Origin: Rebecca billardiae RCC1528
Taxonomy: Eukaryota > Protista > Haptophyta
Direction of reading: 5' to 3'
Assembly: GCA_965240325.2 (NCBI GenBank)
Contig: OZ251253.1
Coordinates: 186,001 to 250,000, forward strand
Length of the DNA stretch: 64,000 nucleotides
Both the position numbers and the translations under genes were made by a program. Within the stretch, counting starts at the first letter, position 1. Each line of letters opens with the position of its first letter. Below are positions 26,226 through 49,686 of the stretch, one piece after another. The notes beneath the pieces were generated by a model that searched no databases, was not told the DNA's origin, and was given only the letters and a program-made list of their open reading frames with translations.

Positions 26226-27187
26226 TCAGAGCATAGCGGCACCGCCGCCGCCCGAGCTCGGCAGCGCGGTCCCCGCGGACGCCCCGGCCGCCGCCGCGGA
26301 CTCGCCCGCGGCCGGTTGCGCGCTCGAGTGCCCGGCACCCGTGGGCGGTGCGGTCTGCCCGTCCGCCGCCGCGGCGCGCTCGGTCGGCGCGCCGGTCCGT
26401 CGCACAGTGGCGACGAGTGCGCCTGTCCCGGCGATGCCGACGACTAGAAGCACGATGGCGGCGGTGGGCGGCAGCATCGGCCGCACGCGCGCGGTGCGCG
26501 GGTGGCGCCCGGCCTCGCTCGTCTGCGCCGCGCCGAGCACCGCGCCCGCGCCGCCCTCCGACCTGTCCGCGGCGGCGGCGCCAATAAGCGGGTAAGTGTA
26601 GATACTGTGGCCGGTCAGGTTGGCGGCGCACGGCGGGCGCGCCAGCTCACACGACGCGCGCAGCGAGGGCGGGAGCCCGCCGTAGCAGCCGAGGAGCTCG
26701 AGGCCCGAGCAGCCCATCTGCGTGAGGCCTGCGGGTCGGTGCGACGGCGCCCACCCGCGCGCGCGCGCGTCAATCGGCCGCGTGGATCGCGGCGCGCTGG
26801 GCCGGCGCGGATCGATTGAGGCGCGCGCCTGCCCGCGCCCGGTCGCGGCGCACCTGCAAGACTGTGCGCCGCCTCCCCGCACGCGGGCGTGGAGCAGGCG
26901 CCGAAGCAGCTGCGCGCCTTCTCGAGGGTCTGCGCGAGCTTCTCTATGCTCCCGCCCGTCGGGAGCGCCGTCGCGCCGCCATAGGCCATCTTCTCGCAAA
27001 ATTGCTTCCGCTTGGCGTTGTCACCCTGCGCCGCCTGCAGCACGTAGCCGAGCGTCTGTCGGTTCCAGCGGAGGACCCACTGCCGCGCGGACTGGAGCTC
27101 GGACTCGCAGTGCTTGTCGTCCGAGGCCGCGCACGGCGCCGCGAGCAGTGCGAGCGCGCACGCGAGGGCCGCCCACGACCTCGCCAT
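26226..27187 (-). CDS. Cys-rich type I membrane/secreted protein, join(27187..26854,26728..26226)
   Basis: Signal peptide MARSWAALACALALLAAPCAA, a phase-1 GT-AG intron at 26729-26853, and a C-terminal TM segment AAIVLLVVGIAGTGALVATV followed by RR. Confidence 0.75.
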
Positions 27188-27307
27188 TGTGCTTTGTGAG
27201 ACGCCCCCGCCCGGCCGTCGTACTGTACAGCACCCGGATCCGATCGCGAGCGATCTCGCGAGCTCGCGGGAGTCGCGGCGTGCCGGTTCGCTCGGCAACT
27301 ACTACGC

Positions 27308-28408
27308 CAAGGGGAGTCAGGGTGCAGCACGTCCAGTCACTTTGGGCTGCAGCTGGAGCTTGGGTCCAAAAGCTTCCCGCGGCGCAGCGGCACTCGCCGC
27401 CGCCGCCGCCGTCGAGGGGCGGTTGTGGCGCGCACGGCGTGAGCCGCTGCGGGCGCTGAGGTGCGCGCGACGGCGGCGCGCCCGGCGGCGCTGCTGTAGG
27501 AGGCCACTGCCCTCCTCTCTGCCCCGCGCGCTTCGCTCGTCGTCGCCGTCTCCGCGCCTGCGACTCAGCGCGCACGCGAGCGCGGCACCGCCCGGCAGCC
27601 GGGGCAATCTCAGCCGTGACTGCGCATGTGCGTCGCGACCTGGTCGGCTCAGCGCGCGAGGCGCGTGCGGGCGAGGTAGGGCCAGTATGGGCGCGCGCCA
27701 TGCCGCCTCGACCTTGCGCCGGTGGGCATGTCGCGGGCCTTGCACCTCTGTCGACAACGTTGACAAACAATGCGGCACCCAAGCGCAGACGTCAGTGTGC
27801 ACGATCGAGGCAGTAGGCGTACAGACGCGATAGTTGCAGAGCCTTTTGTGATCATGCGAGTCATACATTGTCAGTGACTCTCGCCCAGGTCGTCTGCGCG
27901 CTGAACTGACGTTTTGACTGAGTGCCTCGAGATCGCCTCGACGATGGCCCGTGCATTGCTTGAACACTCAACACAGTCCAAGCGGCCAACCAGACACACG
28001 TGCTCAGTTCCCTGTTGTACGCTCTGATGGGCTTACTTGAGGCGGCATGGCGCGCGCCCATACTGGCCCTACCTCGCCCGCACGCGCCTCGCGCGCTGGG
28101 CCGACCAGGTCGCGACGCACATGCGCAGTCACGGCTGAGATTGCCCCGGCTGCCGGGCGGTGCCGCGCTCGCGTGCGCGCTGAGTCGCAGGCGCGGAGAC
28201 GGCGACGACGAGCGAAGCGCGCGGGGCAGAGAGGAGGGCAGTGGCCTCCTACAGCAGCGCCGCCGGGCGCGCCGCCGTCGCGCGCACCTCAGCGCCCGCA
28301 GCGGCTCACGCCGTGCGCGCCACAACCGCCCCTCGACGGCGGCGGCGGCGGCGAGTGCCGCTGCGCCGCGGGAAGCTTTTGGACCCAAGCTCCAGCTGCA
28401 GCCCAACT
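27308..28408. mobile_element. Foldback element A, copy 1 (P/Galileo-like ends); right end cut by element B and displaced to 45531-45562
   Basis: Starts CAAGGGGAGTCAGGG and has inverted arms of about 390 bp. The 7-bp TSD ACTACGC is at 27301-27307, and its reverse complement GCGTAGT is at 45524-45530. Confidence 0.9.
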
Positions 28409-29472
28409 GAGTGCACTCGAGCGAAAACGTGCCAGGCTAGGCATGCGCGGCCCAGTGCGGGCTAGGCATCGGGGGCGATGCCTAGCCCGGCCAGGCTAGG
28501 CATTCGCCCATACCCTCGCGTCGTCAGAACTTTCGGAAACGAAATTACGAAATTCGCGCAAAGGCGGCCCCGGTCTTCTTTCACGGCGGCGCAAGGGGCG
28601 CGGGGGCGCTGGCTCGCGATCCGAAGGGCAGTCGCTCGCGACCTCGCTTGGGCGGCGGCAGCGGCGCTGCGGCATACTGTTTGCCACCCGCGCGGCTGTG
28701 TGCGATCGCGCGGTCCCGTTCGTCGCCACGCCGCGCGCGACCGTTCACGGCACAGTCTTTCCGCACTGTGAGCACCCCTTGCCAGCGCACGGCGGCGGAG
28801 AGCCCAGACAGCCCGTCACGCGCGCGACGTCCTTGTGGGATGCGATGTACTCACCCTAATGCTAGCATGCGCCTGCGTTTTGGTGAGCCTGTTCAGCATC
28901 CAGACCACTCTCTACTGCTGCAAGATGAGTCATCGTCTGCCAATCGGTCAACGAGGCATGGACAGCGCAGCAGTCGTCCATGATCCTCTTGCCCACCCCG
29001 TGGGCAAGCGCATGCCTCCGGGAACCCAAAGAACCTGGGTACATCGCATCCCACAAGGACGTCGCGCGCGTGACGGGCTGTCTGGGCTCTCCGCCGCCGT
29101 GCGCTGGCAAGGGGTGCTCACAGTGCGGAAAGACTGTGCCGTGAACGGTCGCGCGCGGCGTGGCGACGAACGGGACCGCGCGATCGCACACAGCCGCGCG
29201 GGTGGCAAACAGTATGCCGCAGCGCCGCTGCCGCCGCCCAAGCGAGGTCGCGAGCGACTGCCCTTCGGATCGCGAGCCAGCGCCCCCGCGCCCCTTGCGC
29301 CGCCGTGAAAGAAGACCGGGGCCGCCTTTGCGCGACTTTCGTTTCCGAAAGTTCTGAAGACGCGAGGGTATGGGCGAATGCCTAGCCTGGCCGGGCTAGG
29401 CATCGCCCCCGATGCCTAGCCCGCACTGGGCCGCGCATGCCTAGCCTGGCACGTTTTCGCTCGAGTGCACTC
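28409..29472. mobile_element. Foldback element B, copy 1
   Basis: Inverted arms of about 435 bp start with GAGTGCACTCGAGCGAAAACG around a spacer of about 190 bp. A second copy is at 45563-46705. Confidence 0.92.
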
Positions 29473-29554
29473 GGTCCGGCTGCCGCAGGGGGCTTTGCCT
29501 TCCGGACTGGCGCTGCGCCAGTGGCGGCCGCCAACCCGGACTGCGGCGAACCAG

Positions 29555-30455
29555 CGCTTGGCGCGCGCGCGGCGCGGCGCGCTGCGGCCGTCGAGTTGCC
29601 GTGCGAAGGCGGCGCGTTGCGTGCGTGGCATCGGAACGCTGCCGTGCTCCGCACTGCGCCCCGCAGCTCGCTCCTCGTCGACTTTGCCGCGCCTACGATC
29701 AGCGCGCATGCGAGCGTCGCCTCGGAATGAGCGGCCCGCGCCAGCCTCAGCCGTGAGCGCCCGCCTGGCGCGCGATGCGATCAACTCGGGGCACGAGCTG
29801 CGGCTGGGCGAGGAAGCATGTGCCTACGCGCAAGCCGCGCCGTCTTGAGACACCGACCGTGAGCAGGGCATGCACCTTGCACGCAACTATTCTTCTTGCC
29901 CTTGCGCATTGTCGCGGTGTCCTTGAAAGGACCCCTCATCAGAGCAACTACTCAAGCATGGCATGACGGCAGCCACGCGCGCATGCGATGCATAGATGTA
30001 CACGAGTCGCTGCGCGCACACGCAACCCGAAGACTCCTATTAATCGCTTCAGGGCGCTCACGATCTGTTGTTTCATCTCCACTGCATGCAAGGCTCGTGC
30101 AGGCTGATCGGCATTCGTCGACAGCCGTCTGAAGCTGCATGAACGCGCACGATCGATGTCTCAAGGCGGCGCGGCTTGCGCGCAGGCACATACTTCCTCG
30201 CCCAGCCGCAGCTCGTGCCCCGAGTTGATCGCATCGCGCGCCAGGCGGGCGCTCACGGCTGAGGCCGGCGCGGGCCGCTCATTCCGAGGCGACGCTCGCA
30301 TGCGCGCTGATCGTAGGCGCGGCAAAGTCGACGAGGAGAGAGCTGCGGGGCGCAGTGCGGAGCACGGCAGCGTTCCGATGCCACGCACGCAACGCGCCGC
30401 CTTCGCATGGCAACTCGACGGCCGCAGCGCGCCGCGCCGCGCGCGCGCCAAGCGC
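29555..30455. mobile_element. Foldback C: inverted arms of about 300 bp around a spacer of about 305 bp
   Basis: 29555-29852 is the reverse complement of 30157-30455 with few mismatches. The true termini and TSD were not resolved. Confidence 0.75.
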
Positions 30456-31025
30456 CCATCGACGCCAGCGCGCCTTTACGCCAAGCGCGTTTTCATTTTC
30501 CGCGCTTTGTTTTCGCGCGTGAGTTTTCATTGGCGCATGACCCGCGCCCGGCCGCCCGCGGGGAACGCCCCTGCCTTGCAGATGGCAGAATCAAGCTGAA
30601 AGCATTATTCAAGCAGGTGATCCGCGGCGTGGGCGACGCGGGCGGCGCGCGCATTTCGGACGCGCTGTCCTGTGTCCAAACACGTCGCGCGCTGGGACGC
30701 GCGCGTCGCCGGGCTGCGCGCGCCGGAAATGCGCGACGAGCCGTTTGTCGACCTGGCGCGCCTCGCCGTGCAGCCGCACGAAGCCACGCGCCCCGCGGTT
30801 CGCGCGCGCCCGCGGCCTCGCACCCGCAAACTCCGAGTCCGTGACGCCGGCGGCGCCTCACGACGCGTGCCTCGCGCTGCTGCGCGCGCGGCTGGCGAGC
30901 ACGCTGAACGACGTGGACGACGCGCGCAACGCGGCGCGCCGCGGCACACGCCGCGCGCAACAGAATACTCACTCACTTGCTCAAGTGCGCATCACGTACA
31001 TCATGATCAAATAATATATAACCCA

Positions 31026-32279
31026 TTATATTCCGTCAGGCGCACGATATAATGCCAATATGAATAATACAATCTGCAGCATCATAAACTGTCTGCCCTG
31101 GCGGGCGGTGGGGTCGGCGGGCCGTGCCAGTGCTGTCGCAATGTTTCCTCTGTGGGTTCGCGGCTTTCCACATTCGCTCGTGGCCGTGGGTGACGGACAG
31201 TCGGACCAGTGACACCTGTGAAGTTCTCCCACGCGCCCGCGGTCGGCGGTGCGGTACGCGTCCGTGCGCATCAGCGAGGGCCACACCCACGAGGGAATAA
31301 TGTGCAGCACGCGAGGCGGGGCGGGTAGCCCGTTGCTCCGCGCGAGCGCGGGTACGCGCTGCGTGTGCCGCATCTCGACCGCGATGGCGTAATCGAGCGC
31401 CTCGCCGCCGACGAAGCCGCAAGAGTAGATCATGAGCATGTCCTCCTGCCGCCAGGCTCCGAGAGCGGTCGTCCTTTGAGGATGCTTGCCGATGTCCACT
31501 CCGGACATGATGGGCTCGGCGCAGGTCGCGTTGACATCGTACACGGCCGCCACGCTGAGCACGAGCGCGTTGACGTTCAGGCGGTTGTCGCTCTTTGCAT
31601 CTTCGACAGGTCTGGCGCCCGCGTGTTCGGCGGCACGAGGAGCTGTTGGTTGTGCGCGCGCGTGCACAGCGACAGCGTGTGTCTCGCGATCGAGAGTGGG
31701 CACGAGCTGCTCACGCCGGCACACGAATCACAGCGCATTCCTCACCGGCGTGACGACTTCCGCCTTGTCCCGCAGCGCCTGCGCCATGGACGAAGATGGC
31801 GCGGCGATGTTGCATGCTCGACGTTTCATCTCTCTGCGGATGGCATCACGGGCTTGTCTGTGTCGCGCTGCGGCGAGGGTCGCCAACTCGCGATGACGCG
31901 GTTGCTGCCACGGCGACAGACCCGGGAGGTGCGTCCGCTGCGCGTCGTACGCCGTTGGCGCTGCGCTTCCGTCGCATTGGTCACCGTCGACGCCATGCAG
32001 GCCGGACGTGGGCTTCGGCTGAGGGACCGCGACAGATACTGTAGTCCGGTGCGCGGATTGCCGGATTCCGGCGATCGAGTTCAGAAGGCCGCGCCAAATC
32101 TTGCGTCGCGTGCGATGGCGCTTCCCGCCCGCGAGACACCTCGTGATGAGGGCCTTTCCGCACCGAGCCCGACGCGTGGCGGTGGATCGTGCGAGGTGGT
32201 TGTCGTGCGCAGCGCTTGATGCTATGGCCCGTGCGAGCGCTCGACATGCAAGTCGGGCGAGGATCGCCCCAGGTCGCAC
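31026..32279 (-). pseudogene. Element-F ORF with one in-frame TGA (31728-31730); possible partial Ulp1-like domain
   Basis: ORFs 31728..32279 and 31026..31724 are in the same frame. The stop codon is CGA in copies F1 and F2. Confidence 0.5.
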
Positions 32280-32620
32280 GATTGTGTGGACGCGCCGAGC
32301 GTACCTCCAAACGCGTCGACTTTGGCCCTCGTTCGACCTGCACGCGAGACGACGAGGGCAGCAATCGCGAATCGGGCGAAAAACCGTCAGGGAATCATCG
32401 CGCGATGTCCGCGCCGGCGTTGGATCTGGCGCGCGCCGCCCACGCGCTCCGCGCCGTGACGCACTCGCTTTTCGGCCGAGCGTCCCCAGTGGGAGCTGCG
32501 AGGGCGCCCGGTAGTGAGCGAGGCGATTTTCTTTTCTTTGCGAGGCGATTTTCTTTTATTGTCTTTTCTTTTTCTGATCTTTTCCCCGGGCACTACAAGG
32601 GGCGGACCTACGGCCCGCCA
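31087..32620 (-). mobile_element. Element F, copy 3 (TSD-less, rolling-circle-like)
   Basis: An inverted, more diverged homologue of 35061-36625 and 36639-38200, with the same ends TGGCGGGCCGT...CAGTT. Confidence 0.85.
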
Positions 32621-33697
32621 CATCAATATTTCGCACGTATGCATTCCGACGCAGCGGCGCCAGCAGGAAGATAGCCGCTAGCCACAGACGATGCTCAATG
32701 CCACCACCTGTGACCTGATCGTCACATTCGTCACGGCCCGGCTTGCGTCGCTGTCCGAGTACCATCACAAACAAGACGATCATCAGCGCGCACATTCACA
32801 CAACACATCGCAGCCTCCCGCTGAATGTAAGATTAATACGGCATAGCACGGCCAACGGATCTCGACTACAGTACTCAGAACTGAAATATGATATGCCGAA
32901 CAGTCGTTCGAACTAAACCGGCCATAGCAGCGTGCGCATCCTCCCGCGCCCTCGCCGCGCTGTGTTCGACCAGCCCCACCTTGACCTGGACAAGGCCGCT
33001 AGGTCCCCGCTGTTTTCAAGGTGATCGACCAATCACCAATAAACCGGTGGGAACGGTCTTCTCCTCTGGACAAGTTCTGGAACCAGTCCCGCCTCGAGAG
33101 CTCGCACCTGTCCTCCGCCTGGCGCTGCGCTAGTCATACTCAAGTCCGCCGTCGTGGCCCGCCACCGCTGCACGTCCACGACCGCGGTAGACGCCCGCTC
33201 ACCGTCCGGGCGGCCGGGACCCGGCGCGAATCCGCGTGGCAGTCACGTCGTCACCGTACTGCTACTCCGGTACCGCGATCTGGCGTGCAGGCTAAGCTAC
33301 TACTGACTGACCAGACACGTACCCGCATCATCGACCGCCACCCCGCCCACCCACCCAACCAGCCCCGCCCACGGGGCTGAACGCCCGCACGCAGGCCCAC
33401 TGTCAGTGTTACTGAGTGCCCACTCGGTGCGGCCAGTCGGTCGGCTCAGAAGTCAGGGACAGCTGACTGATATCCGCGCCCGGAGCCCGATGTCGGACCG
33501 CAGCAGGGCCGGCACCGTGACCGAGGTCAGTGGCGCCTGCCGCTGCTGGACTCTCGTGGCTGACTCGACGGTCGGCCCGGCCGTGCGTGCGCCACCCGTT
33601 GCGGTCGCCGCGGATCAGGCGTGAATGGCGACGAGCGACATCGCCTGAACCGTGACGCCGGCCTTGACTGGGCATCTCGATGCATGTGACTGCTGAG

Positions 33698-34818
33698 TCA
33701 CCAGGCAAGCTGCCTCGCAGTCGACGACTCCCCGAGCTCCTGCATCATCTCAATCTCGTCGTCGCCAGCGCCGGGCTGCTCGCTGTTCACAGCCTGCTGG
33801 CGGGTCTGGATGCGCGCGCCCGGGCCCTGCACCGCCGCGAGGCCCGGCGCGTTATTGGCATTGTCCGAGGCAGCGTTGGACTCGAAGCAAATCTGCGCGG
33901 ACGGCTGCATGGGGACAACGCGCAGCTCCGAAGGGCCAGGCTGCTGCTGTCCGACCTGCGCAGGGAACGGATCTCCGTTGAACGTGAAGAGTCCGCCGAG
34001 AGCGCGCTCGCGGAGAGCGGCGAATACGCGCTGCTGCCCCTGCGTACTCATCTGACCTGTCCCCCGACAAAGGACCTCGATGAGCTTTGCGGTGATGTCC
34101 GTAGACACTTCGGCGTCGTTCGCCTGGCGCGCAGCGTCCTCCTGGGCCTCCTCGCGGCGCTTCTTCTCGCGCGCATAGGCCTCCTCGGCCTTCTTGCGGC
34201 GCTTCGCCTCGCGCTCAGCGGTCGCCTTGGCCTGGATGGCGCGCTTCTGGCTTGCCGCCACGCGCGACTTTTCGGACTCCACGTCCGACTTGGCCTTGTC
34301 GAGGAGCTCCTTGGCCTCGATGACGCGCTTCTCGGCCTCCGCTGCGCGCGATTTGGCAGCGTCCGTCTCCTGCTTGGCCTCGTCGATCGTCGCGTTGAGG
34401 AGCATCTCCGCCTCGACGCCACGCTGCTGGGCCAACGATTCGGTCTCGCCGAGCCGCTGCTGCGCCTCGTCCGTCATAAACTGGAACGTCGCGACGAGGT
34501 CCTCGCTCGTGTCCGCGCGCTGCTTCTCCTTCTCGGCTTTGGCCTGCGCGCGCGTCCAGGGCGCAGCGAGCGCGCGTGGTGAGCTGCGGCCGCATCATGC
34601 GCATGGCCGCGCGCGATGCGCACCATGGCTTTCTGGGCCACGCCGGCCCCGACGCGTGCAACAAAGTGCGTGCTGCGGCGCTTCAGCGGTGCGCCCTTGA
34701 TAGCCTCGGCCGCGACCTTGATCTTGAACGGGGTGTCAAACGGCCCGGCGGCGGACAGGGCGTCGCGAACGAAGGGCGTGTCGGTCTCCATCTCGGAATC
34801 GGCGATGCGCGGTGCCAT
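33698..34818 (-). CDS. Coiled-coil protein of duplicated segment G, copy 1, join(34818..34624,34543..33698), 346 aa
   Basis: An 80-nt phase-0 GTGCGC...GCGCAG intron and a long EKRA-rich helix. A near-identical copy is at 48566-49686. Confidence 0.75.
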
Positions 34819-35060
34819 GTCGATGACGGGGGGAGTTGAGGGTGCTGGCGCGAGCGGCGATGGAGAGGTCGCGACGTCGGCGACTCGTGCGGGAGTGAGG
34901 CGGGAGACTCGGGCTGCGTCCTGGGTGTCCAACGACCCGTTGGCCCAGCCCCTGTTTAGTCAAAGCCAGCCGGGGAAGACAAGACGCCAGCCAATCACGC
35001 GCCTTTCGTGCAAAAAGCGATGGCGGACGGATCCGTCGCCGATGACCAAAAAGGCAAGAA

Positions 35061-36625
35061 TGGCGGGCCGTAGGTCCGCCCCTTGTAGTGCCCGGGAAAA
35101 ACATATAAGAAAAAGAAAAAGGAAAAAGAAAATCGCCTCGCAGAGAAAAGAAAATCGCTTCGCTCGACACTACCGGGCGCCCTCGCAGCTCCCACTGGGG
35201 ACGCTCGGCCGAAAACCATATGGCGCCTGGCGCGGAGCGCGTGGGCCGCGCGCGCCGAATCCAACGCCGGCGCGGACATCGTGAGAGGACTCCCGAGGGG
35301 GGTTTTCGCCCGATTCGCGATTGCTGCCCTCGTCGTCTCGCGTGCAGGTCGAACGGGGGCTAAATCGACGCGTTTGGAGCGGTACGCTCGGCGCGTCGAC
35401 ACGATCGTGAGACCTGGGGCGATCCTCGCCCGACGTGCACGTCGAAAGCTCGCACCGGCCATAGCATCATGCGCTGCGCACGATGACCGCCTCGCGCGAT
35501 CCACCGTCGCGCGTCGGGCTCGGTGCGAGAAAGCCCTCATCACGAGGCGTCTCGCGGGCGGGAAGCGCCATCGCACGCGACGCAAGATTTGGCGCGGCCT
35601 TCTGAACTCGATCGCCGGAATCCGCGCACCGGACTCAGTCAGTGCTCGCGGTCCGGTCCCTCAGCCGAAGCCCACGTCCGGCCTGCATGGCGTCGACGGT
35701 GACCATGCGACGGAAGCGCAGCGCCAACGGCGTACGACGCGCAGCGGACGCACCTCCCGGGTCTGTCGCCGTGGCAGCAACCGCGTCATCGCGAGTTGGC
35801 GACCCTCGCCGCAGCGCGACACAGACAAGCCCGTGATGCCATCCGCAGAGAGATGAAACGTCGAGCATGCAACATCGCCGCGCCATGGCCTCGTCCATGG
35901 CGCAGGCGCTGCGGGACGAGGCGGAAGTCGTCACGCCGGTGACGGATGCGCTGCGATTCGTGTGCTCGCGTGAGCAGCGCTTGCCCACTCTCGATCGCGA
36001 GTGGCACACGCTGTCGCTGTGCGCGCGCGCGCGCACAACCAACAGCTCCTCGTGCCGCCGAGCACGCGAGCGCCAGACCTGTCGAAGATGCGAAGAGCGA
36101 CGACCGCGTGAACGTCAACGCGCTCGTGCTCAGCGTGGTGGCCGTGTACGACGTCAACGCGACCTGCGCCGAGCCCATCATGCCTGGAGCCGACATCGAC
36201 AAGCATCCTCGCGACGACCGCTCTCGGCTGGCGGCAGGAGGACATGCACATGATCTACTCTGGCGGCTTCATCGGCGGCGAGGCGCTCGATTACGCCATC
36301 GCGGTCGACATGCGGCACATACAGCGCGTACCCGCGCTCGCACGGAGCAACGGGCTGCCCGCCCCGCCCCGCGTGCTGCACATTCCCTCGTGGGTGTGGG
36401 CCTCGCTAGTCGCTGATGCGCATACAATACTCTAAGAGTACAGACCGTGAAACGTGTGTACATCACGTCGGGGAGCCAACTTCACGTGTCACCGGCGGTC
36501 CTTGCACTCGACTGTCCGTCACCCACGGCCACGAGCGAATGTGGTGGAAAGACGCGAACCCGCAAAGGATACATTGCGACAGCACTGGCACGGCCCGCCG
36601 ACCCCCCGCCCGCCAGGGCACAGTT
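35061..36625 (+). mobile_element. Element F, copy 1
   Basis: Absent from the homologous empty site at 48300-48335; no TSD. Confidence 0.9.
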
Positions 36626-36638
36626 TGGTTTTTTTAAA

Positions 36639-38200
36639 TGGCGGGCCGTAGGTCCGCCCCTTGTAGTGCCCGGGAAAAAGATAAGAAAAAGAAAAATGAA
36701 AAAGAAAATCGCCTCGCAGAGAAAAGAAAATCGCTTCGCTCACTACCGGGCGCCCTCGCAGCTCCCACTGGGGACGCTCGGCCGAAAACCATATGGCGCC
36801 TGGCGCGGAGCGCGTGGGCCGCGCGCGCCGAATCCAACGCCGGCGCGGACATCGTGAGAGGACTCCCGAGGGGGGTTTTCGCCCGATTTGCGATTGCTGC
36901 CCTCGTCGTCTCGCGTGCAGGTCGAACGGGGGCTAAATCGACGCGTTTGGAGCGGTACGCTCGGCGCGTCGACACGATCGTGAGACCTGGGGCGATCCTC
37001 GCCCGACGTGCACGTCGAAAGCTCGCACCGGCCATAACATCAAGAGCTGCGCACGATGACCGCCTCGCGCGATCCACCGTCGCGCGTCGGGCTCGGTGCG
37101 AGAAAGCCCTCATCACGAGGCGTCTCGCGGGCGGGAAGCGCCATCGCACGCGACGCAAGATTTGGCGCGGCCTTCTGAACTCGATCGCCGGAATCCGCGC
37201 ACCGGACTCAGTCAGTGCTCGCGGTCCGGTCCCTCAGCCGAAGCCCACGTCCGGCCTGCATGGCGTCGACGGTGACCATGCGACGGAAGCGCAGCGCCAA
37301 CGGCGTACGACGCGCAGCGGACGCACCTCCCGGGTCTGTCGCCGTGGCAGCAACCGCGTCATCGCGAGTTGGCGACCCTCGCCGCAGCGCGACACAGACA
37401 AGCCCGTGATGCCATCCGCAGAGAGATGAAACGTCGAGCATGCAACATCGCCGCGCCATGGCCTCGTCCATGGCGCAGGCGCTGCGGGACGAGGCGGAAG
37501 TCGTCACGCCGGTGACGGATGCGCTGCGATTCGTGTGCTCGCGTGAGCAGCGCTTGCCCACTCTCGATCGCGAGTGGCACACGCTGTCGCTGTGCGCGCG
37601 CGCGCGCACAACCAACAGCTCCTCGTGCCGCCGAGCACGCGAGCGCCAGACCTGTCGAAGATGCGAAGAGCGACGACCGCGTGAACGTCAACGCGCTCGT
37701 GCTCAGCGTGGTGGCCGTGTACGACGTCAACGCGACCTGCGCCGAGCCCATCATGCCTGGAGCCGACATCGACAAGCATCCTCGCGACGACCGCTCTCGG
37801 CTGGCGGCAGGAGGACATGCACATGATCTACTCTGGCGGCTTCGTCGGCGGCGAGGCGCTCGATTACGCCATCGCGGTCGACATGCGGCACATACAGCGC
37901 GTACCCGCGCTCGCACGGAGCAACGGGCTACCCGCCCCGCCCCGCGTGCTGCACATTCCCTCGTGGGTGTGGGCCTCTGCTGTCTGTGCTGATGCGCATA
38001 CAATGGCTCTAAGAGTACAGACCGTGAAACGTGTGTACATCACGTCGGGGAGCCAACTTCACGTGTCACTGGTCCTTGCACTCGACTGTCCGTCACCCAC
38101 GGCCACGAGCGAATGTGGTGGAAAGACGCGAACCCGCAAAGGATACATTGCGACAGCACTGGCACGGCCCGCCGACCCCCCCGCCCGCCAGGGCACAGTT
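36639..38200 (+). mobile_element. Element F, copy 2
   Basis: Inserted 13 bp from F1; no TSD; differs from F1 at several positions. Confidence 0.9.
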
Positions 38201-38326
38201 TATATTCTTGCAAGCGATGGCGGACACGTTGACCAATCCCTGCTCACCATTCCTTGCAGATGGCAGAATCAAGCTGAAAGCTTATTCAAGGGATCGACCA
38301 ATCACCAACAAACCGGTGGGAAAAGG

Positions 38327-39445
38327 CAAGGGGAGTCAGGGTACAGAACGTCCAGTTGGGCTGCAGCTGGAGCTTGGGTCCAAAAGCTTCCCGCGGCGCA
38401 GCGGCACTCGCCGCCGCCGCCGCCGTCGAGGGGCGGTTGTGGCGCGCACGGCGTGAGCCGCTGCGGGCGCTGAGGTGCGCGCGACGGCGGCGCGCCCGGC
38501 GGCGCTGCTGTAGGAGGCCACTGCCCTCCTCTCTGCCCCGCGCGCTTCGCTCGTCGTCGCCGTCTCCGCGCCTGCGACTCAGCGCGCACGCGAGCGCGGC
38601 ACCGCCCGGCAGCCGGGGCAATCTCTGCCGTGACTGCGCATGTGCGTCGCGACCTGGTCGGCCCAGCGCGCGAGGCGCGTGCGGGCGAGGTAGGGCCAGT
38701 ATGGGCGCGCGCCATGCCGCCTCAAGTAAGCCCATCAGAGCGTACAACAGGGAACTGAGCACGTGTGTCTGGTTGGCCGCTCAGTGGACTGTGTTCAAGC
38801 AATGCACGGGCCATCGTCGAGGCGATCTCGAGGCACTCAGTCAAAACGTCAGTTCAGCGCGCAGACGACCTGGGTGAGAGTCACTGACAATGTATGACTC
38901 GCATGATCACAAAAGGCTCTGCAACTATCGCGTCTGTACGCCTACTGCCTCGATCGTGCACACTGACGCCTGCGCTTGGGTGCCGCATTGTTTGTCAACG
39001 TTGTCGACAGAGGTGCAAGGCCCGCGACATGCCCACCGGCGCAAGGTCGAGGCGGCATGGCGCGCGCCCATACTGGCCCTACCTCGCCCGCACGCGCCTC
39101 GCGCGCTGGGCCGACCAGGTCGCGACGCACATGCGCAGTCACGGCAGAGATTGCCCCGGCTGCCGGGCGGTGCCGCGCTCGCGTGCGCGCTGAGTCGCAG
39201 GCGCGGAGACGGCGACGACGAGCGAAGCGCGCGGGGCAGAGAGGAGGGCAGTGGCCTCCTACAGCAGCGCCGCCGGGCGCGCCGCCGTCGCGCGCACCTC
39301 AGCGCCCGCAGCGGCTCACGCCGTGCGCGCCACAACCGCCCCTCGACGGCGGCGGCGGCGGCGAGTGCCGCTGCGCCGCGGGAAGCTTTTGGACCCAAGC
39401 TCCAGCTGCAGCCCAACTGGACGTGCTGTACCCTGACTCCCCTTG
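38327..39445. mobile_element. Foldback element A, copy 2 (complete)
   Basis: CAAGGGGAGTC...GACTCCCCTTG with arms of about 395 bp and TSD GAAAAGG on both sides. A related uninterrupted flank sequence is at about 33015-33118. Confidence 0.93.
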
Positions 39446-39528
39446 GAAAAGGCGTATCCCTAATCCCGCCTCGAGAGCTCGCACCTGTCCTCCGCCGGCG
39501 GGCCGGCGCAGGGAACTCGGGCATCGCG

Positions 39529-42500
39529 ATGATGAGCCAACCGTTCGACAGCAGTCCGGGCGCGCAGGGTATGGACGCCTTGGAGATGTTCTCGGCCATC
39601 AACCAGATGTCCGAGCAGGAGTTCAGCTCGCTCGTCCACGAGATCGACAGGATGGGAGGAGAAGGAGCTCTTCCTCCTCCTCGCGGGCGCGCGGCGCAAG
39701 CCGACACGTCCGTGCCGCCCGTGCCGGCTGAGCCGACTTCGATGTCGGCGCAACAGCCTACGGGCTTTCTTGTGGTCCTGTGGCCGCAGACGCTCGCATT
39801 GACGCCCACGCAACAGCAGGAGATGATGGCACACATCGCTGCGACCATGGGCCCGCAGCAGACACAGCTGCAGCTGCAGCAGTGGCAACATCCGGCGCAG
39901 CAGGGGGGGCAGATCCAGCCGCTGCAGCAGTCAGTCGTGGCGCAACCTGCACAGGCGCAGCCGCCAGCGCCCATGGAAGTGGGCCCGCCCACTGCGCATC
40001 CGGCGGCAGCTCCGGGGCGGGTCGGCGACTGCGCCGGCGTCCCGGCAGCTCTCGCGCCCAGTTTGAGCACGGGCGGCGCGGCTGGTCCCAGCAGTGCTGG
40101 AGGCGGCGCGGCAATCGGAGCGGCGCCGAGCGGCGCCGCCGCGGCATCGAGCAGCCCAGCCGCGGGCGCGGCGCTTGCGGCGCCAAGCGGCCGCTGCGCG
40201 GCACCACAACAGGCCATCCCACCACCTTCTCTGGGCGTCGATCCAAAGTCACCGGCGGGCCGATTCCGCGACAAACTCCACACGATATTCAAGAAGGCGG
40301 CAGGGGAGTACTGCGCGTACCTGACTTCGCGGTTGCAAGCGCAGCGCGAAGGTCGCCAGCCGCCACAGGACTACTTGCTGGCGGACAAGCTGCAGAAGGA
40401 GTTTGACCGCCACATCGACTTTGGCGACGATGTCGCCCTGCGCAACGAGCTGCTGTTCAAGGCGCTTGACCCGCTCAAGGACACCTGCTTCTTTGCGTGC
40501 GCGGCGCCAGGCGGGTGCATGAAGGACGGCTTCGTCGACGCAAAAGCCACCATCGACGCTGCCGACAAGGCCCGCGCGGCGCTGGTGACGGCGCTGGATG
40601 CGGCGATGAGACACCGGCACGTCTACTTGGTTATCAAGCGCGAGGGCGAGTTGGCGAGCTACCACCCGCAGCAGGAGGTGGACGAGTTGCGGCGCATCGC
40701 CGAGCCGCATGGCAGCGAGCCGCGGAGGCGCACGGACATCACGATGAAGTCGATCGGGAGCAGGACAGGCTGCGTGCTCAACCTGCTGCTGCTGCGGCGC
40801 GACGCCGCGTTCGCGCTCCTCGCGGCTCTGCAGAGCGCACACCCGCCCACGCTGGGCGGCGAGCCGGTGCTGTGGGCCGTGATGCTCAAGATGGATTGCG
40901 AGGAGGTGGTGGAGCAGGTGCGCCTCGCCGCTCCCGCCGAGTGCTCCCTGGACGAGTGCGCCTCGATCGCGCGCGAGCTCGTGCGCGACGTGCTGCGCCA
41001 GCCTCTCGTCGTCTTCTCGAGCGCGCCCTCGGACGCAGCCGCGAGCGAGCGCGCGGCCGCGAGGGCGAGCGTGCGCACCGCCGCGCCCGCGGCCGCGGCT
41101 GCGCCGCCGCCGCCGGGGCCGAGCGCGGAGCCGAGCGAGGCGGCTGTGCTCGAGCGCTTCCGCGAGGTGAGCGGGCCCGAGCCAGCTATCATCGACGCGT
41201 TCGTCGATGAGGTCCGGCGTGAGGAGTCGGCGCTGCGCGGCGAGCTCGCGCTATTCGTCCGCGCGGCCGCGCGCGCCGCGGCCGCCGCGCCCGCATCGGC
41301 TGGCGCAACGGGCGCGCCGAGGGCCAGCCCTGGCCTGCTCTCCGGCTCCATACTGGATTCATCACGAAAGAGACGGCGCGACGATCCGCAGACCGCCGCC
41401 GAGCCGCTCACAGCGCCGCAGCCCGCCCGCACCGCTGCGGAGCAGCTCGAGGCGCTCGCGCGCGCTATGGGCGTGGGCTCGGCGGAGGAGCTGATGCGGC
41501 TGGAGGGGGCGAGTTGGGAGACGAATACAGCCGCTATGGGCGTGGGCTCGGCGGCGGCGGCGGCGCACGCGCAGGCGATCGCACACCTCGTCGCGCACAG
41601 TGCCAAGCTGAAGAAGCTCGATCTCAGCCTTGCGGACGCGGACGACGAGTGCGTGCGGCTGCTGGCGGAGGCGCTCCGCACCAACACCTCGCTGCAGACG
41701 CTCTGGCTGGGGTACGCGCACGCACGGCGCGGCGAGGCGCGCGGCGCGTGGCGCTTGCGGTGGAGTGGGGGAGGCAGGTTCGTGCGCCGTGTGTAGCGCG
41801 AGCACGCGCGCGCCGCGCCGCAGCAGCGCCGTCGCGCGAGGCTGCGGTCGTGCCCGGCGCGCGCACCGCCCCGCGCGCCACCCCCACTTTGGGCGGCGCA
41901 CGCGGCCGGTGCGGTGGCGCGCGCGCAGCATGGCGGTGCTGCGCGGTGCGCGTGGTGCGCAGCGGCGTTGGCTGACATCGCCCGTGTCATCCCGCGCGAC
42001 CACCGTGCTCGCCTCTCCGCGCGCGCCCTCCCCTCTGCGTGCCCCGCCTCGGCACACAGGGGCAACGAGCTGACGGACGTCTCCGCGCTGGCGGAGGCGC
42101 TCCGCACCAACACCTCGCTGCAGGAGCTCGACCTGACGTACGCGCATGCACGGCGTGGCGAGGCGGGCGGCGCGCGGCGCGTGCAGCGGGGTGGGGGAGG
42201 CAGGCCCGCGCGCCGCGTGCAGCGTGGGCACCCGCGCTCGGCGCCGCAGCAGCGCCGTCGCGCGAGGCTGCGGCCGCGCCCGGCGCGTGCGCCGCTCTGT
42301 GCGCGCCGCACAGCTGGCGGTGCGCAAGGCCTGGTCGGCGGCACGCCCGCGGCGGGTGCGGTGTGCGGTGCGTGGTGCGCAGCGGCGTTGGCTGACAGCG
42401 CCCTCCCCACCCCGTGCGACCGTCGTGCTCGCCTCTCTCCGCGCCCGTACTCCCCTCTGCGTGCCTCCGCTCGGCACACAGGGGCAACAAGCTGACGGAC

Positions 42501-43445
42501 GTCTCCGCGCTTGCGGAGGCGCTCCGCACCAACACCTCGCTGCAGTCGCTCGACCTGAGGTACGCGCACGCACGGCGTGGCGAGGCGGGCGGCGCGCGGC
42601 GCGTGCAGCGGGATGGGGGAGGCAGGGCCGCGCGCCGTGTGCAGCGTGGGCACCCGCGCTCGGCGCCGCAGCAGCGCCGTCGCGCGAGGCTGCGGCCGCG
42701 CCCGGCGCGTGCGCCGCTCTGTGCGCGCCGCACAGCTGGCGGTGCGCAAGGCCTGGTCGGCGGCACGCCCGCGGCGGGTGCGGTGTGCGGTGCGTGGTGC
42801 GCAGCGGCGTTGGCTGACAGCGCCCTCCCCGCCCCGCGCGACCGTCGTGCTCGCCTCTCTCGGCGCGCGCCCTCCCCTCTGCGTGCCTCCGCTCGGCACA
42901 CAGGGTTAACCAGCTGACGGACGTCTCCGGCACGGCGCTGGCGGAGGCGCTCCGCACCAACACCTCGCTGCAGTCGCTCTACCTGATGTACGCGCACGCA
43001 CGGCGCGGCGAGGCGGGCGGCGTGCGGCGCGTGCAGCTGAGTGGGGGAGGCAGGAGAGCGGGGGAGGCATGATCGTGTGCCGTTCGCAGCGTGGGCACCC
43101 ACGCGCGGCGCCGCAGCAGCGTCGTCGCGCGCGGCTGCGGCCGCACCCACAGCGAGCGCCCTGCTGCGCGCGTCGCCCCACAGCGGGTTGCGCGCGTCGC
43201 CGGTGCAGTGGTGCCTGCGCAGCAGGCGTGCACGCAGCGGTGCGGTGCGGTGCGGTGCGCGTTGTGCGCAGCAGCGTGCGCTGACGCCGCCCTTCCCACC
43301 CACCCCTTGCGACCGCCGCGCCCATCCCGCATCGTGCCCCCGCTCGACACACAGGGGCAACCGCCAGCTGAGCGATGGTTTGAGACGCGCCATTCGACAG
43401 GCCTGGGAAGGCAGTGGCCGCAAAAGCGGGGGCCTCGGCGTCTAG
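39529..43445 (+). CDS. RI/NLRC3-type leucine-rich-repeat protein, join(39529..41711,42060..42137,42482..42559,42904..42987,43355..43445)
   Basis: Four phase-2 GTACGC...CACACAG introns. Each internal exon (78, 78, 84 nt) encodes one LRR (xNxLTDVSALAEALRTNTSLQxLxLx). The terminal exon encodes a capping segment, AIRQAWEGSGR. Confidence 0.88.
41664..43360 (+). repeat. Tandem exon+intron repeat, period about 422-451 bp, 4 units
   Basis: GCGGAGGCGCTCCGCACCAACACCTCGCTGCAG recurs four times. Introns 2 and 3 are both 344 nt and nearly identical. Confidence 0.95.
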
Positions 43446-43561
43446 GGAGGCCTGGAGGATGGCGCGCGTTGGGCAGTGTTGCCACGCGCAGCCTTCGGCC
43501 CCCGCGCCCGCTGGCCGCTGCACGCAGGCGCCGACTGCTGCCGCCAGCAGCCGCCGACATC

Positions 43562-43661
43562 NNNNNNNNNNNNNNNNNNNNNNNNNNNNNNNNNNNNNNN
43601 NNNNNNNNNNNNNNNNNNNNNNNNNNNNNNNNNNNNNNNNNNNNNNNNNNNNNNNNNNNNN
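43562..43661. other. Assembly gap (100 N)
   Basis: A run of N. Confidence 1.
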
Positions 43662-44465
43662 CCGACATCGGCGGCAGCCGCGCCGTCTGTCCCCGGCACT
43701 GCTTGTGCTGCACGTGGCGCATCAGCAGTGATGGTCGCGCGGCCGGGCGGCAGTCGGCAGACGACGTCATTGATGGGGTCATCAGCAGTCGTGCACTCTC
43801 AGTAGTGATATACGTAGTGACGACGATCGAGCTAGCACAGTACCGCTGCCGGCAGCCGCCCCCGACTCGCTCAAGCTCACTCGCTGTCCGGGTCAGCAGT
43901 CGGCCATTCCGGCGCATCCCTGATCTGCCCAGGGCGCCGCGACGGCTCGGGCCGGCTCGGGCGGCGGCTGCGACGAGGGCGTGCTCCCAGCCCCCCTTGC
44001 GGGGCGTGCCTGGGGCACGGCGAGCTTTGGGCTGATTGCCAATGCGTAGGACGTTCGCCCCACCATGCCCAGTACGACACGACGGCGGACGTGTCCGTGA
44101 GCTGTACTCTACTCATCTCATAGCCTCGCCACTCATGCCGCGCATCGCCACAATGCTGCGCTCAGCGGCGGGTTTGTGCTGGTGGAAGGCTTCGCGTGGG
44201 GTCTCTGCAACGCCATCACCGCCTTCGGCCCACTCTGTCAGGACGCACGTCGCGCGTCCGTCGCCACGCGCTCGACCTCGCGTCCGCGGCCGCCATGACT
44301 TTCGGCGAAGATGATTCTGCGTCTCACCCACGGAAGGTTCGTCGCGCCGCTTCGGCCATCTCGACTTTCTAAACGCCATTTTACGCGGTGTGATCTCATC
44401 TTGCGGACATGGCCGGTGACATCACCACCGGGCACACAGCTTGTCGCCACCCTTCCAACCACAGC

Positions 44466-45400
44466 ATGGGGCAGACGGTCTCACGCCTGTTCGACAGCCT
44501 CTTCGCGCGAGACACGCGCGTGCTCATGCTCGGGCTCGACGGCGCGGGCAAGACCACCCTCCTGTACAAGCTCAAGCTCGACGAGCTCGTCACCACTATC
44601 CCCACGATCGGCTTTAATTGCGAGGAGGTGACGTACCGCAATCTGCACATGATGATCTGGGACATCGGCGGGCAGGACCGGATCCGCGCGCTCTGTGCGC
44701 GCCGCGTCGGCGCGCGCGCGCACGCGGACGCGGGGCGTCGTGCGCGCGCTCGCGGCTCCGCGTTGCGCGTCGTCACCAACGTTGACCTTCCCGACCGCGC
44801 GCCGCGGCCGCGTGCGCCCGCTGCACGACACCAGGGCGGCATTACTTCTACGCGACAGACTGCCTGGTGCGTCGAGGCGCGCGGCCCCGCCGGTGCTCGG
44901 GTGCCTCGGGGCCTGTTCGATATCCACTCATTCCGCCCCTGCCACACGCACACGCGCCACCGCTGCGCGCAGATCTTCGTCGTGGACTGCAACGACCGCG
45001 ACCGGCTGCACGAGGCGCGCGACGAGCTGCACCGCGTGCTGAACGACGAGGCGATGGACAACCCGCTCGTGCTGGTGTACGCGAACAAGTGCGCGCCGCG
45101 CGCTCCCCACGCCCGGGCCCCGCGTGGCGGCGCGCGCGCGACTCTGACTTGGGGCGCCAACCCTTGCCAACGTGCGCGGCGCTACCGCCGCCGCCGCCGC
45201 CGCGCAGGGGCGACCTGCCCAACGTGCTCACGGCGTACGAGGTGGCGGACGGCCTGAAGCTGCGCTCGCTGCGCAACACGTGGCACATCCAGCCGTGCAG
45301 CGCGGTGCGCGGCGACGGAGTCTTCGAGGGGCTCGAATGGCTCGGCGCGCAGGTGAACAAGCGACCCGTCGCGAAGGCGCGGCTCATGGCGGCGGGATGA
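44466..45400 (+). CDS. ARF: ADP-ribosylation factor family small GTPase, join(44466..44694,44835..44866,44973..45088,45208..45400)
   Basis: MG myristoylation start, [32 protein letters not shown] and CSA motifs. Three GT-AG introns restore the frame. Confidence 0.95.
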
Positions 45401-45530
45401 GGCCGGCCGGCCGGCCGGGTGTAGGAATAGAGCACCGGGTGACGTCAGTTCGCGTCATCGATGACGACATATTACCGTATACTCGGAGTTTGATCCCGTT
45501 CTTTTCCCGCGGATCAAACCCGTGCGTAGT

Positions 45531-45562
45531 CAAGGGGAGTCAGGGTACAGGACGTCCAGTTG
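45531..45562 (-). mobile_element. Displaced terminal 32 bp of element A copy 1
   Basis: CAAGGGGAGTCAGGGTACAGGACGTCCAGTTG abuts B2 and is flanked by the reverse complement of the A1 TSD. Confidence 0.9.
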
Positions 45563-46705
45563 GAGTGCACTCGAGCGAAAACGTGCCAGGCTACAGTTTA
45601 TTTGTTTTAACGTGCGTAAGGCTCACGGTGGCAGGTTGCCGCGCCATCCTTCATCGCACGCTCTCCGAAGAGAGACAGTAGGCATGCGCGGCCCAGTGCG
45701 GGCTAGGCATCGGGGGCGATGCCTAGCCCGGCCAGGCTAGGCATTCGCCCATACCCTCGCGTCTTCAGAACTTTCGGAAACGAAAGTCGCGCAAAGGCGG
45801 CCCCGGTCTTCTTTCACGGCGGCGCAAGGGGCGCGAGGGCGCTGGCTCGCGATCCGAAGGGCAGTCGCTCGCGACCTCGCTTGGGCGGCGGCAGCGGCGC
45901 TGCGGCATACTGTTTGCCACCCGCGCGGCTGTGTGCGATCGCGCGGTCCCGTTCGTCGCCACGCCGCGCGCGACCGTTCACGGCACAGTCTTTCCGCACT
46001 GTGAGCACCCCTTGCCAGCGCACGGCGGCGGAGAGCCCAGACAGCCCGTCACGCGCGCGACGTCCTTGTGGGATGCGATGTACCCAGGTTCTTTGGGTTC
46101 CCGGAGGCATGCGCTTGCCCACGGGGTGGGCAAGAGGATCATGGACGACTGCTGCGCTGTCCATGCCTCGTTGACCGATTGGCAGACGATGACTCATCTT
46201 GCAGCAGTAGAGAGTGGTCTGGATGCTGAACAGGCTCACCAAAACGCAGGCGCATGCTAGCATTAGGGTGAGTACATCGCATCCCACAAGGACGTCGCGC
46301 GCGTGACGGGCTGTCTGGGCTCTCCGCCGCCGTGCGCTGGCAAGGGGTGCTCACAGTGCGGAAAGACTGTGCCGTGAACGGTCGCGCGTGGCGTGGCGAC
46401 GAACGGGACCGCGCGATCGCACACAGCCGCGCGGGTGGCAAACAGTATGCCGCAGCGCCGCTGCCGCCGCCCAAGCGAGGTCGCGAGCGACTGCCCTTCG
46501 GATCGCGAGCCAGCGCCCCCGCGCCCCTTGCGCCGCCGTGAAAGAAGACCGGGGCCGCCTTTGCGCGACTTTCGTTTCCGAAAGTTCTGACGACGCGAGG
46601 GTATGGGCGAATGCCTAGCCTGGCCGGGCTAGGCATCGCCCCCGATGCCTAGCCCGCACTGGGCCGCGCATGCCTAGCCTGGCACGTTTTCGCTCGAGTG
46701 CACTC
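45563..46705. mobile_element. Foldback element B, copy 2 (opposite orientation to B1; 85-bp insert at 45594-45678)
   Basis: Same arms as B1, with the spacer reverse-complemented relative to B1. Confidence 0.92.
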
Positions 46706-46746
46706 GGACCGGGAGGGGGGGCTTTGCTTTTCGGGAGCCAAAGGAA

Positions 46747-48257
46747 GGTGGCACCTCCGGAACAGACGGCGGGAGGCAAGATGGCGAAGAAACAGCCCCG
46801 GCGTCGCGCTCGCTCGAGGCTCGGAGGCCCGTGCGAGCCGGCGGGGGCTCGAGCGGCACGGGGCGCACGTCGGGCGGGCAGACCATGCACGTGGGCCTTC
46901 CGAACCGCTCGCCGACGGCCTCGCTCCGCCGCTTCTCGCGCTCGCGAGCTGTGTCCGTGCGCGCGCGGTGGGCGGGCGTCGCGCAGCTCGACGCGAGGCG
47001 TCCACGGCGGAGATTGGGCCCAGCTGGGCGCTCGAACGGCTTCGACGTGCGGGGCCGGTCATGTACGTGCGCGCGCGCGCGCCGGGGCCGTCCGGCGACC
47101 TTGTGGTTGTGCTGCGGGAACGACGTCACACCCGGGCGGCACTGCGAGGTTCTGCGCGGGCCCATGTGCATGCATGTGCGCGAGGCGTGGGTGGGCTCGC
47201 GATGGCGGGGCGCGTTGGTCGAAGGTGCGCCATGGTCGTCGGCGCCGGCTAGGTGCCGTCGGGCGCGCGCGGCGGTCCACTCGGGGCCACGCGGGCCGCC
47301 GGGAGCTCGTGCGCAGCCGCTCGGCCAGATAGGTCGGGCCCCGGCGGCAGTCTGAACGAGGTCAGCACTTCACATTTCGACAAACTCCGCATCCCCGCTC
47401 GTGGTGGGCCACCATGCGGCGCACCAGGGGGTGCAAGCAAGCAGCCGTCCCGAGGAAACTGTTGGTAGGATTCGAAAATAATACGGAAATCCTTGAAAAA
47501 GCCCTTATTTCGACATTTTCGATAATATTTTCGAATCCTACCAACAGTTTCCTCGGGACGGCTGCTTGCTTGCACCCCCTGGTGCGCCGCATGGTGGCCC
47601 ACCACGAGCGGGGGTGCGGAGTTTGTCGAAATGTGAAGTGCTGACCTCGTTCAGACTGCCGCCGGGGCCACCTATCTGGCCGAGCGGCTGCGCACGAGCT
47701 CCCGGCGGCCCGCGTGGCCCCGAGTGGACCGCCGCGCGCGCCCGTCGGCGCCTAGCCGGCACCGACGACCATGGCGCAGCTTCGACCAACGCGCCCCGCC
47801 ATCGCGAGCCCACCCACGCCTCGCGCACATGCATGCACATGGGCCCGCGCAGAACCTCGCAGTGCCGCCCGGGTGTGACGTCGTTCCCGCAGCACGACCA
47901 CAAGGTCGCCGGACGGCTCCGGCGCGCGCGCGCGCACGTACATGACCGGACCCGCACGTCGAAGCCGTTCGAGCGCCCAGCTGGGCCCAATCTCCGCCGT
48001 GGACGCCTCGCGTCGAGCTGCGCGACGCCCGCCCACCGCGCGCGCACGGACACAGCTCGCGAGCGCGAGAAGCGGCGGAGCGAGGCCGTCGGCGAGCGGT
48101 TCGGAAGGCCCACGTGCATGGTCTGCCCGCCCGACGTGCGCCCCGTGCCGCTCGAGCCCCCGCCGGCTCGCACGGGCCTCCGAGCCTCGAGCGAGCGCGA
48201 CGCCGGGGCTGTTTCTTCGCCATCTTGCCTCCCGCCGTCTGTTCCGGAGGTGCCACC
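46747..48257. mobile_element. Foldback D: 1.5-kb near-perfect palindrome with Kolobok-like ends
   Basis: GGTGGCACCTCCGG...CCGGAGGTGCCACC with arms of about 730 bp and an AT-rich spacer of about 45 bp (47481-47525). Flanks are GGAA and TTAA. Confidence 0.85.
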
Positions 48258-48565
48258 TTAATGGTGAGCAGGGATTGGTCAACGTGTCCGCCATCGCTTG
48301 CAAGAATATATTTAAAAAAACCATTCTTGCCTTTTTGGTCATCGGCGACGGATCCGTCCGCCATCGCTTTTTGCACGAAAGGCGCGTGATTGGCTGGCGT
48401 CTTGTCTTCCCCGGCTGGCTTTGACTAAACAGGGGCTGGGCCAACGGGTCGTTGGACACCCAGGACGCAGCCCGAGTCTCCCGCCTCACTCCCGCACGAG
48501 TCGCCGACGTCGCGACCTCTCCATCGCCGCTCGCGCCAGCACCCTCAACTCCCCCCGTCATCGAC

Positions 48566-49686
48566 ATGGCACCGCGCATCGCCGATTCCGAGATGGAGAC
48601 CGACACGCCCTTCGTTCGCGACGCCCTGTCCGCCGCCGGGCCGTTTGACACCCCGTTCAAGATCAAGGTCGCGGCCGAGGCTATCAAGGGCGCACCGCTG
48701 AAGCGCCGCAGCACGCACTTTGTTGCACGCGTCGGGGCCGGCGTGGCCCAGAAAGCCATGGTGCGCATCGCGCGCGGCCATGCGCATGATGCGGCCGCAG
48801 CTCACCACGCGCGCTCGCTGCGCCCTGGACGCGCGCGCAGGCCAAAGCCGAGAAGGAGAAGCAGCGCGCGGACACGAGCGAGGACCTCGTCGCGACGTTC
48901 CAGTTTATGACGGACGAGGCGCAGCAGCGGCTCGGCGAGACCGAATCGTTGGCCCAGCAGCGTGGCGTCGAGGCGGAGATGCTCCTCAACGCGACGATCG
49001 ACGAGGCCAAGCAGGAGACGGACGCTGCCAAATCGCGCGCAGCGGAGGCCGAGAAGCGCGTCATCGAGGCCAAGGAGCTCCTCGACAAGGCCAAGTCGGA
49101 CGTGGAGTCCGAAAAGTCGCGCGTGGCGGCAAGCCAGAAGCGCGCCATCCAGGCCAAGGCGACCGCTGAGCGCGAGGCGAAGCGCCGCAAGAAGGCCGAG
49201 GAGGCCTATGCGCGCGAGAAGAAGCGCCGCGAGGAGGCCCAGGAGGACGTTGCGCGCCAGGCGAACGACGCCGAAGTGTCTACGGACATCACCGCAAAGC
49301 TCATCGAGGTCATTTGTCGGGGGACAGGTCAGATGAGTACGCAGGGGCAGCAGCGCGTATTCGCCGCTCTCCGCGAGCGCGCTCTCGGCGGCTTCTTCAC
49401 GTTCAACGGAGATCCGTTCCCTGCGCAGGTCGGACAGCAGCAGCCTGGCCCTTCGGAGCTGCGCGTTGTCCCCATGCAGCCGTCCGCGCAGGTTTGCTTC
49501 GAGTCCAACGCTGCCTCGGACAATGCCAATAACGCGCCGGGCCTCGCGGCGGTGCAGGGCCCGGGCGCGCGCATCCAGACCCGCCAGCAGGCTGTGAACA
49601 GCGAGCAGCCCGGCGCTAGCGACGACGAGATTGAGATGATGCAGGAGCTCGGGGAGTCGTCGACTGCGAGGCAGCTTGCCTGGTGA
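48566..49686 (+). CDS. Coiled-coil protein of segment G, copy 2, join(48566..48760,48841..49686)
   Basis: Same structure as 33698-34818. Five amino-acid differences are visible in the ORF track. Confidence 0.75.

Follow-up and report, generated by a model that had tools for sequence, protein, structure and literature searches.

A probable inversion of about 16 kb bounded by two opposite copies of a foldback element in the haptophyte alga Rebecca billardiae RCC1528

The stretch of DNA described here is a 64-kb window (64,000 nucleotides) of the genome assembly of the haptophyte Rebecca billardiae RCC1528 (GCA_965240325.2, contig OZ251253.1, positions 186,001 to 250,000 of the forward strand). 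All coordinates are those of the window, position 1 being its first letter. The assembly comprises 72 Mb in 41 pieces, and this small number of pieces suggests that long reads lie behind it. The G+C content of the window is 62-84% across most of its length, and young repeats form a nest between 27 and 50 kb. Within this nest two copies of a foldback element, here called B, stand in opposite orientation at 28409-29472 (B1, 1064 bp, plus strand) and 45563-46705 (B2, 1143 bp, minus strand). They enclose a block of 16,090 letters (29473-45562), including a gap of 100 N whose true length is unknown. The block is defined by the junctions that are restored when it is flipped, and it is probably an inversion with its breakpoints in the two B copies.

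Element B is a foldback of 1056-1064 bp with arms of about 440 nt and a loop of 182 nt. Its ends (GAGTGCACTC) are 10-nt palindromes, and its target site duplications (TSDs) are 5 bp long. B1 is flanked by CAACT on the left and GGTCC on the right, B2 by AGTTG and GGACC, respectively; the flanks are mismatched within each copy and match crosswise. Thirteen other full-length B copies served as a control for the TSDs (two further copies on contig C29 and one on contig C36 were left out). A perfect 5-bp duplication was found in 12 of the 13, all of them simple copies with 91-99% identity to B1 and correctly paired flanks, and it is from these that B1 and B2 depart. The thirteenth copy (L012) is a 2.2-kb composite without a duplication. 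When the segment 29473-45562 is flipped, a 5-bp duplication is obtained at both B copies, CAACT at B1 and GGACC at B2. By our arithmetic, ten letters would match by chance with a probability of about 4e-6 at 70% G+C.

The element to the left of B1 is repaired by the same flip. A1 (27306-28408) is a foldback with CA..TG ends which is 98% identical over 1103 nt to A2 (38327-39445), an intact copy of the same family. Family A generates 7-bp duplications, GAAAAGG in the case of A2. A1 lacks its last 27 bp beyond the insertion point of B. Together with one CAACT its missing end amounts to 32 bp, the reverse complement of which is found at 45531-45562, at the other end of the block; the last five letters there, AGTTG, are the second CAACT copy of B. 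The detached end adjoins GCGTAGT (45524-45530), so that the whole interval 45524-45562 (minus strand) holds the A1 end and the right TSD copy. GCGTAGT is the complement of the ACTACGC that stands to the left of A1 (27299-27305, plus strand). Flipping restores the A1 end and the 7-bp duplication ACTACGC, with no bases lost or gained at the breakpoint. With B and one CAACT removed, the rebuilt A1 end differs from the intact A2 end in one letter.

On its right side B1 adjoins an element of family C, of which dozens of copies are present in the genome. The body of this copy, delimited by comparison with its paralogues, lies at 29488-30571 on the minus strand and extends from the left end CAGGGGCG.. 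up to the first arm of a subterminal hairpin. In nine of nine paralogues the body continues as GCAAAGCCCCC-GCAGC-GGGGGCTTTGCTTTTCAGGAGC.., and in the window the second arm of the hairpin, with the 11 letters that follow, is located at 46716-46739, just right of B2. The interval 46706-46744 (plus strand) consists of GGACC (the second TSD copy), the rest of the C hairpin loop, the second arm with its 11 bp, and CAAAGG. Flipping rejoins the C body with its right part across a junction that is one continuous sequence in all nine paralogues. B2 is inserted in the hairpin loop, which is 21 nt long in this copy versus 5 nt in the paralogues.

A fourth sequence, E, is restored as well. E is about 1.7 kb long, has only two copies in the genome, both in the window, and is a local duplication rather than a transposon. 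E1 (33453-38290, plus strand) is interrupted by two family-F insertions (35061-38201); its end is uninterrupted and reads ..CTGCAAGG AATGGTGAGC.. in the region 38251-38290. The body of E2 (48260-49935, minus strand; inverted relative to E1 in the present order, direct after the flip) has AATGGTGAGC at its beginning, 48260. The last 40 bp of E2 (..CTGCAAGG) are detached and lie at 30574-30613 (minus strand), on the other strand with respect to that beginning and on the far side of C; they are 97.5% identical to 38252-38290 and otherwise unique in the genome. The flip rejoins this 40-bp end with the body as in E1, and E2 becomes one copy with a single interruption point holding C (with B2 inside) and D, a further foldback element.

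On sequence grounds the flipped order is firmly established as the ancestral one, because flipping restores the B duplications, A1, C and E2. The uninterrupted sequences are seen in paralogues, namely A2, nine C copies and E1. A search for the B2-free (empty) site gave no match in this genome with up to 3 mismatches and no exact match in the metagenome collection. As far as the assembled letters go, the change is shown to be a clean reciprocal exchange within two B copies, base-exact at A1. An earlier note on this DNA had given the boundaries and crosswise flanks of B1 and B2, and had claimed that flipping returns a matching TSD to each, rejoins the terminal 32 bp of A1 with ACTACGC, and turns the repeats at about 29487-29508 and 46714-46736 back into one hairpin. 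The coordinates and letters are as it had them, both TSD pairs return, and the A1 junction is exact against A2. The hairpin is identified here as the subterminal hairpin of C.

The block carries two genes intact, and neither breakpoint cuts coding sequence. The gene at 44463-45400 (plus strand) encodes a small GTPase of the ARF family, the earlier identification of which was borne out by Pfam Arf matches of 4e-27 for its first and 2e-05 for its last exon, these two exons being the ones confirmed. The second gene is made of exons with one leucine-rich repeat (LRR) each. Its tandem array of units of about 422 bp lies at 41587-43445 on the plus strand. Outside the block, beyond the left end of A1, the minus strand has an open frame that starts at 27187 and has a hydrophobic, signal-peptide-like beginning; no Pfam match was found for it. 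In the ancestral order and without A, the ARF stop (45400) would lie about 241 bp upstream of the ATG at 27187, in agreement with the distance of about 250 bp estimated before.

Element D (46745-48259), a 1.5-kb foldback, shares its insertion point in E2 with C. It has GG / AA flanks in the window and TT / AA flanks in three other copies (L042, L043, L048). The other copies would fit either a TTAA duplication or insertion without duplication, and the window copy appears to fit only the second. The right end of this C copy is also unusual: the last 28 bp of the family (GTGTGGCAGGATCCCGGGAACGCCCTTG in nine paralogues) are replaced by CAAAGG, which resembles the CAAGG of E to the left of C. No target duplication was seen in any of the nine C paralogues. 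A second rearrangement at D, suggested by the GGAA versus TTAA left flank and by the 28 bp absent from C, was considered and rejected: C and D share one point in E2 (CTGCAAGG | AATGG), and D can be read as inserted between NN and AA without duplication, which makes a further inversion unnecessary. The two copies of E were later struck by different elements, E1 twice by F, and E2 by C, B and D. As now arranged, E1 and E2 make up another inverted pair (98% identity over 1.6 kb, separated by 13 kb) that offers one more substrate for rearrangement.

The B family is small and uniform. About 22 elements in the genome carry its 21-nt ends (43 ends counted). By structure B belongs to the foldback class, since it consists mostly of long inverted arms, generates a target duplication and is present in many copies; from this structure it is presumably non-coding. 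B1 and B2 are 99.0% reverse-complementary over 1035 nt, the 182-nt loop included. B1, B2 and eleven other copies were aligned, and the consensus of the seven closest copies was taken as reference. B1 departs from the consensus only by an 8-bp insertion and one adjacent substitution, and the only departures of B2 are an inserted piece of about 86 bp and two substitutions. Every one of these differences is private to its copy, which leaves 0 informative sites among the 13 aligned copies for a test of chimerism. B1 and B2 are each within about 0.3% of the consensus, and the event is therefore considered recent. Several other families have in common with B only the terminal 25-130 nt, and another family of higher copy number matches the inner arms of B at 82-84%. 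In a search that was not exhaustive, eight loci with lone ends of the B type gave no recognisable transposase; most of them have no more than 33-130 bp of the terminus in common with B.

Some further observations concern B and its ends. Two 10-kb stretches on different contigs, L057 (G000:C29:1145750-1155749) and L058 (G000:C34:355650-365649), are 99.98% identical, end in a B-type terminus and hold an open frame with a CCCH zinc finger. They represent either a large mobile element or a segmental duplication of very recent date. The 3-kb element within them gave no Pfam transposase; the sole match is the CCCH zinc finger, outside the element. The insertion of about 86 bp in B2 (at about 45592-45679), with TA on each side, is a very abundant micro-element. 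There were 341 candidates in the genome at first look, and about 35 of 40 scored were 100% identical over 85-89 bp, which points to a very recent, massive amplification. At both B target sites (28398-28408 and 29473-29483) GCAGCC directly precedes the 5-bp duplication, and other B copies often have ..TGC or ..C at the position before it; this hints at a target preference of B wider than the duplicated letters.

The assembly gap (43562-43661, 100 N) had been noted before as lying inside the block, which is the case. It is located about 120 bp past the LRR array and 800 bp before ARF, and touches neither breakpoint; open frames across it carry no meaning. Its left edge ends ..GCCGCCGACATC and its right edge begins CCGACATCGGCGGC... 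The eight letters CCGACATC are common to both edges (43554-43669), and nearby letters are partly mirror-symmetric. This may reflect a tiny overlap of contigs, a break at a short palindrome, or chance in GC-rich DNA.

The inversion is probably real and present in the organism. It is a distinctly unlikely alternative that the organism is uninverted and that the assembler misoriented the segment between the inverted 1.1-kb repeats. The caveat of the earlier note that such a mis-join would look the same stands, as the sequence signature would be identical, and the gap with the same eight letters at both edges means that the region was not assembled in one piece. Such an artefact is rendered less likely by 12 further simple copies of B, near-identical and all with matching flanks, which indicate that the assembler normally crosses B correctly; flanks are also correctly paired at A2 and at the three D copies. 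Each of B1 and B2 lies within a contig, with both flanks and no N's, and an artefact would need two reciprocal mis-joins in two contigs. An assembly of 72 Mb in 41 pieces amid repeats of 98-100% identity also implies that the reads greatly exceeded 1.1 kb. Since both orders show the same B ends, orientation can be read only from molecules of more than 1.1 kb. The sole public run, available as Logan contigs, has about 15 million records with a mean of about 100 bases, which is too short to bridge B. In the interval 26500-32400 the Logan pieces measure 171-520 bases, and among them none was shown to cross the junctions 28408/28409 or 29472/29473 or a whole B copy. Each contig alone has a B with mismatched flanks, so the exchange is independent of the scaffold join, and only the size of the block and its reading as a simple inversion depend on that join.

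As to mechanism, the tentatively preferred reading is a recent inversion of about 16 kb with breakpoints in two opposite B copies, made by ectopic recombination between them, to which a probability of roughly 0.45 is given. In this sequence of events, B would first have inserted into the end of A1 at CAACT, and a second, oppositely oriented B some 16 kb off, at GGACC in the C hairpin loop. The two copies, 99% identical, would then have undergone homologous recombination, by which all the DNA between them was flipped. Ectopic recombination is expected to leave inverted copies, exchanged duplications and chimeric copies at the breakpoints (Delprat et al. 2009, PMC2775673). Copies of one family in opposite orientation at both breakpoints, and exchanged duplications, were found here. 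Breakage with staggered cuts followed by end-joining was ruled out, since the junctions lie exactly at the ends of B and the duplication has the 5-bp length of the family. Several points weigh against the preferred reading. Scaffolding joined the two contigs that carry the left junction (A1-B1-C) and the right one (ARF-A1 end-B2-C end), respectively, neither B was shown to be spanned by a read or contig, and the assembly is the sole source of the present orientation. All differences between B1 and B2 are private, so chimeric copies, the defining test against hybrid-element insertion, were not shown. Finally, with about 22 elements in 72 Mb, the chance of a second copy within 17 kb is about 1% per copy by our arithmetic, which speaks for a one-step origin or for local hopping. 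The latter is frequent among cut-and-paste elements, and the region between 27 and 50 kb does collect transposons.

A one-step origin would be provided by hybrid-element insertion, which is judged rather unlikely. Here a single B would be present in A1, and after replication a transposase would pair its left end on one sister chromatid with the right end on the other and insert them at GGACC 16 kb away, so that a single event would yield the inversion, the 5-bp duplication and the second copy. The outcome of this process has been described as looking strikingly like what ectopic recombination leaves, exchanged duplications included, but with identical instead of chimeric copies (PMC2775673). 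It would account for two of about 22 elements being only 16 kb apart, and the absence of inherited differences between B1 and B2 is as it predicts, although so uniform a family would yield near-identical copies under recombination too. Likewise, both new junctions lie exactly at B ends with the duplication length of the family, which fits recombination equally. The family is young, with copies that are 98-99% alike and perfect duplications, but no B transposase was found at the loci examined, and its activity is inferred from copy identity alone; the mechanism is documented for P and Ac/Ds elements, not for the B family. Of the earlier claim that the locus carries the signature of ectopic recombination between foldback elements, the inverted copies, the exchanged TSDs and the restored neighbours are upheld, whereas the private changes give no ground for recombination over hybrid-element insertion.

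If ectopic recombination made the inversion, it could also be reversible, with both orientations coexisting in the culture or population. This is a variant of the recombination reading and does not add to its odds; it is very unlikely. The inverted B copies, with 1.06 kb of 99% identity 16 kb apart, are a substrate for repeated recombination, as is the inverted E1/E2 pair in the present order. No loose ends of a second orientation were seen in the short Logan contigs, which had little power to reveal them. The most improbable of the possibilities considered is that of a standing invertible switch, in which the B copies would keep flipping a 16-kb cassette of LRR array and ARF, with both orientations present side by side, and so change the promoter-proximal neighbours of these genes. 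If true, it would be a eukaryotic analogue of the invertible segments of bacteria.

Provided that the assembly is correct, the case is a textbook example, exact to the base, of an inversion with transposon boundaries from outside animals, plants and fungi, its host being a very GC-rich alga. It would mean that foldback elements there reshape gene order, besides inserting, in a genome full of young ones. The inversion is also a recent and easily assayed structural marker for the comparison of strains or the study of polymorphism, and the case is useful as an assembly check.

The closest known cases are the Galileo inversions 2j, 2q7 and 2z3 of Drosophila buzzatii, which have the same signature (PMC2775673). 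Shared features are opposite, non-coding foldback copies at both breakpoints with exchanged duplications, breakpoints in intergenic regions rich in transposable elements, no loss of bases, and secondary insertions nearby. In contrast to these inversions, the B copies are without shown chimerism, and the present inversion, in a GC-rich algal host, is 16 kb long and not cytologically visible. B appears to act like Galileo in this event but is not taken as a relative of it, because its duplication is 5 bp long and not 7 bp, the length seen in family A; it also has no sequence or known transposase in common with Galileo. Autonomous members of the Galileo / P superfamily encode a THAP/P-type transposase, and nothing recognisable as a transposase was seen at the eight loci with lone B-type ends. 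BuT5, a miniature inverted-repeat transposable element of the P superfamily in Drosophila mojavensis and D. uniseta, is likewise a non-coding element of about 1 kb at both breakpoints of a natural inversion; it differs in belonging to another family and in reportedly marking fixed inversions between species (PMC3698922). Inversions bounded by transposon ends, with a duplication of family length at the new junction, are also reported to be produced by alternative transposition of Ac/Ds in maize (PMC8225341) and by hybrid-element insertion of P (PMC2775673). The Ac/Ds and P cases were reportedly followed genetically with an active transposase, whereas here the mechanism is only compatible with the sequence. 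The kind of event is a well-known one, of the Galileo type, and involves no new mechanism; it is the host and the element family that are new.

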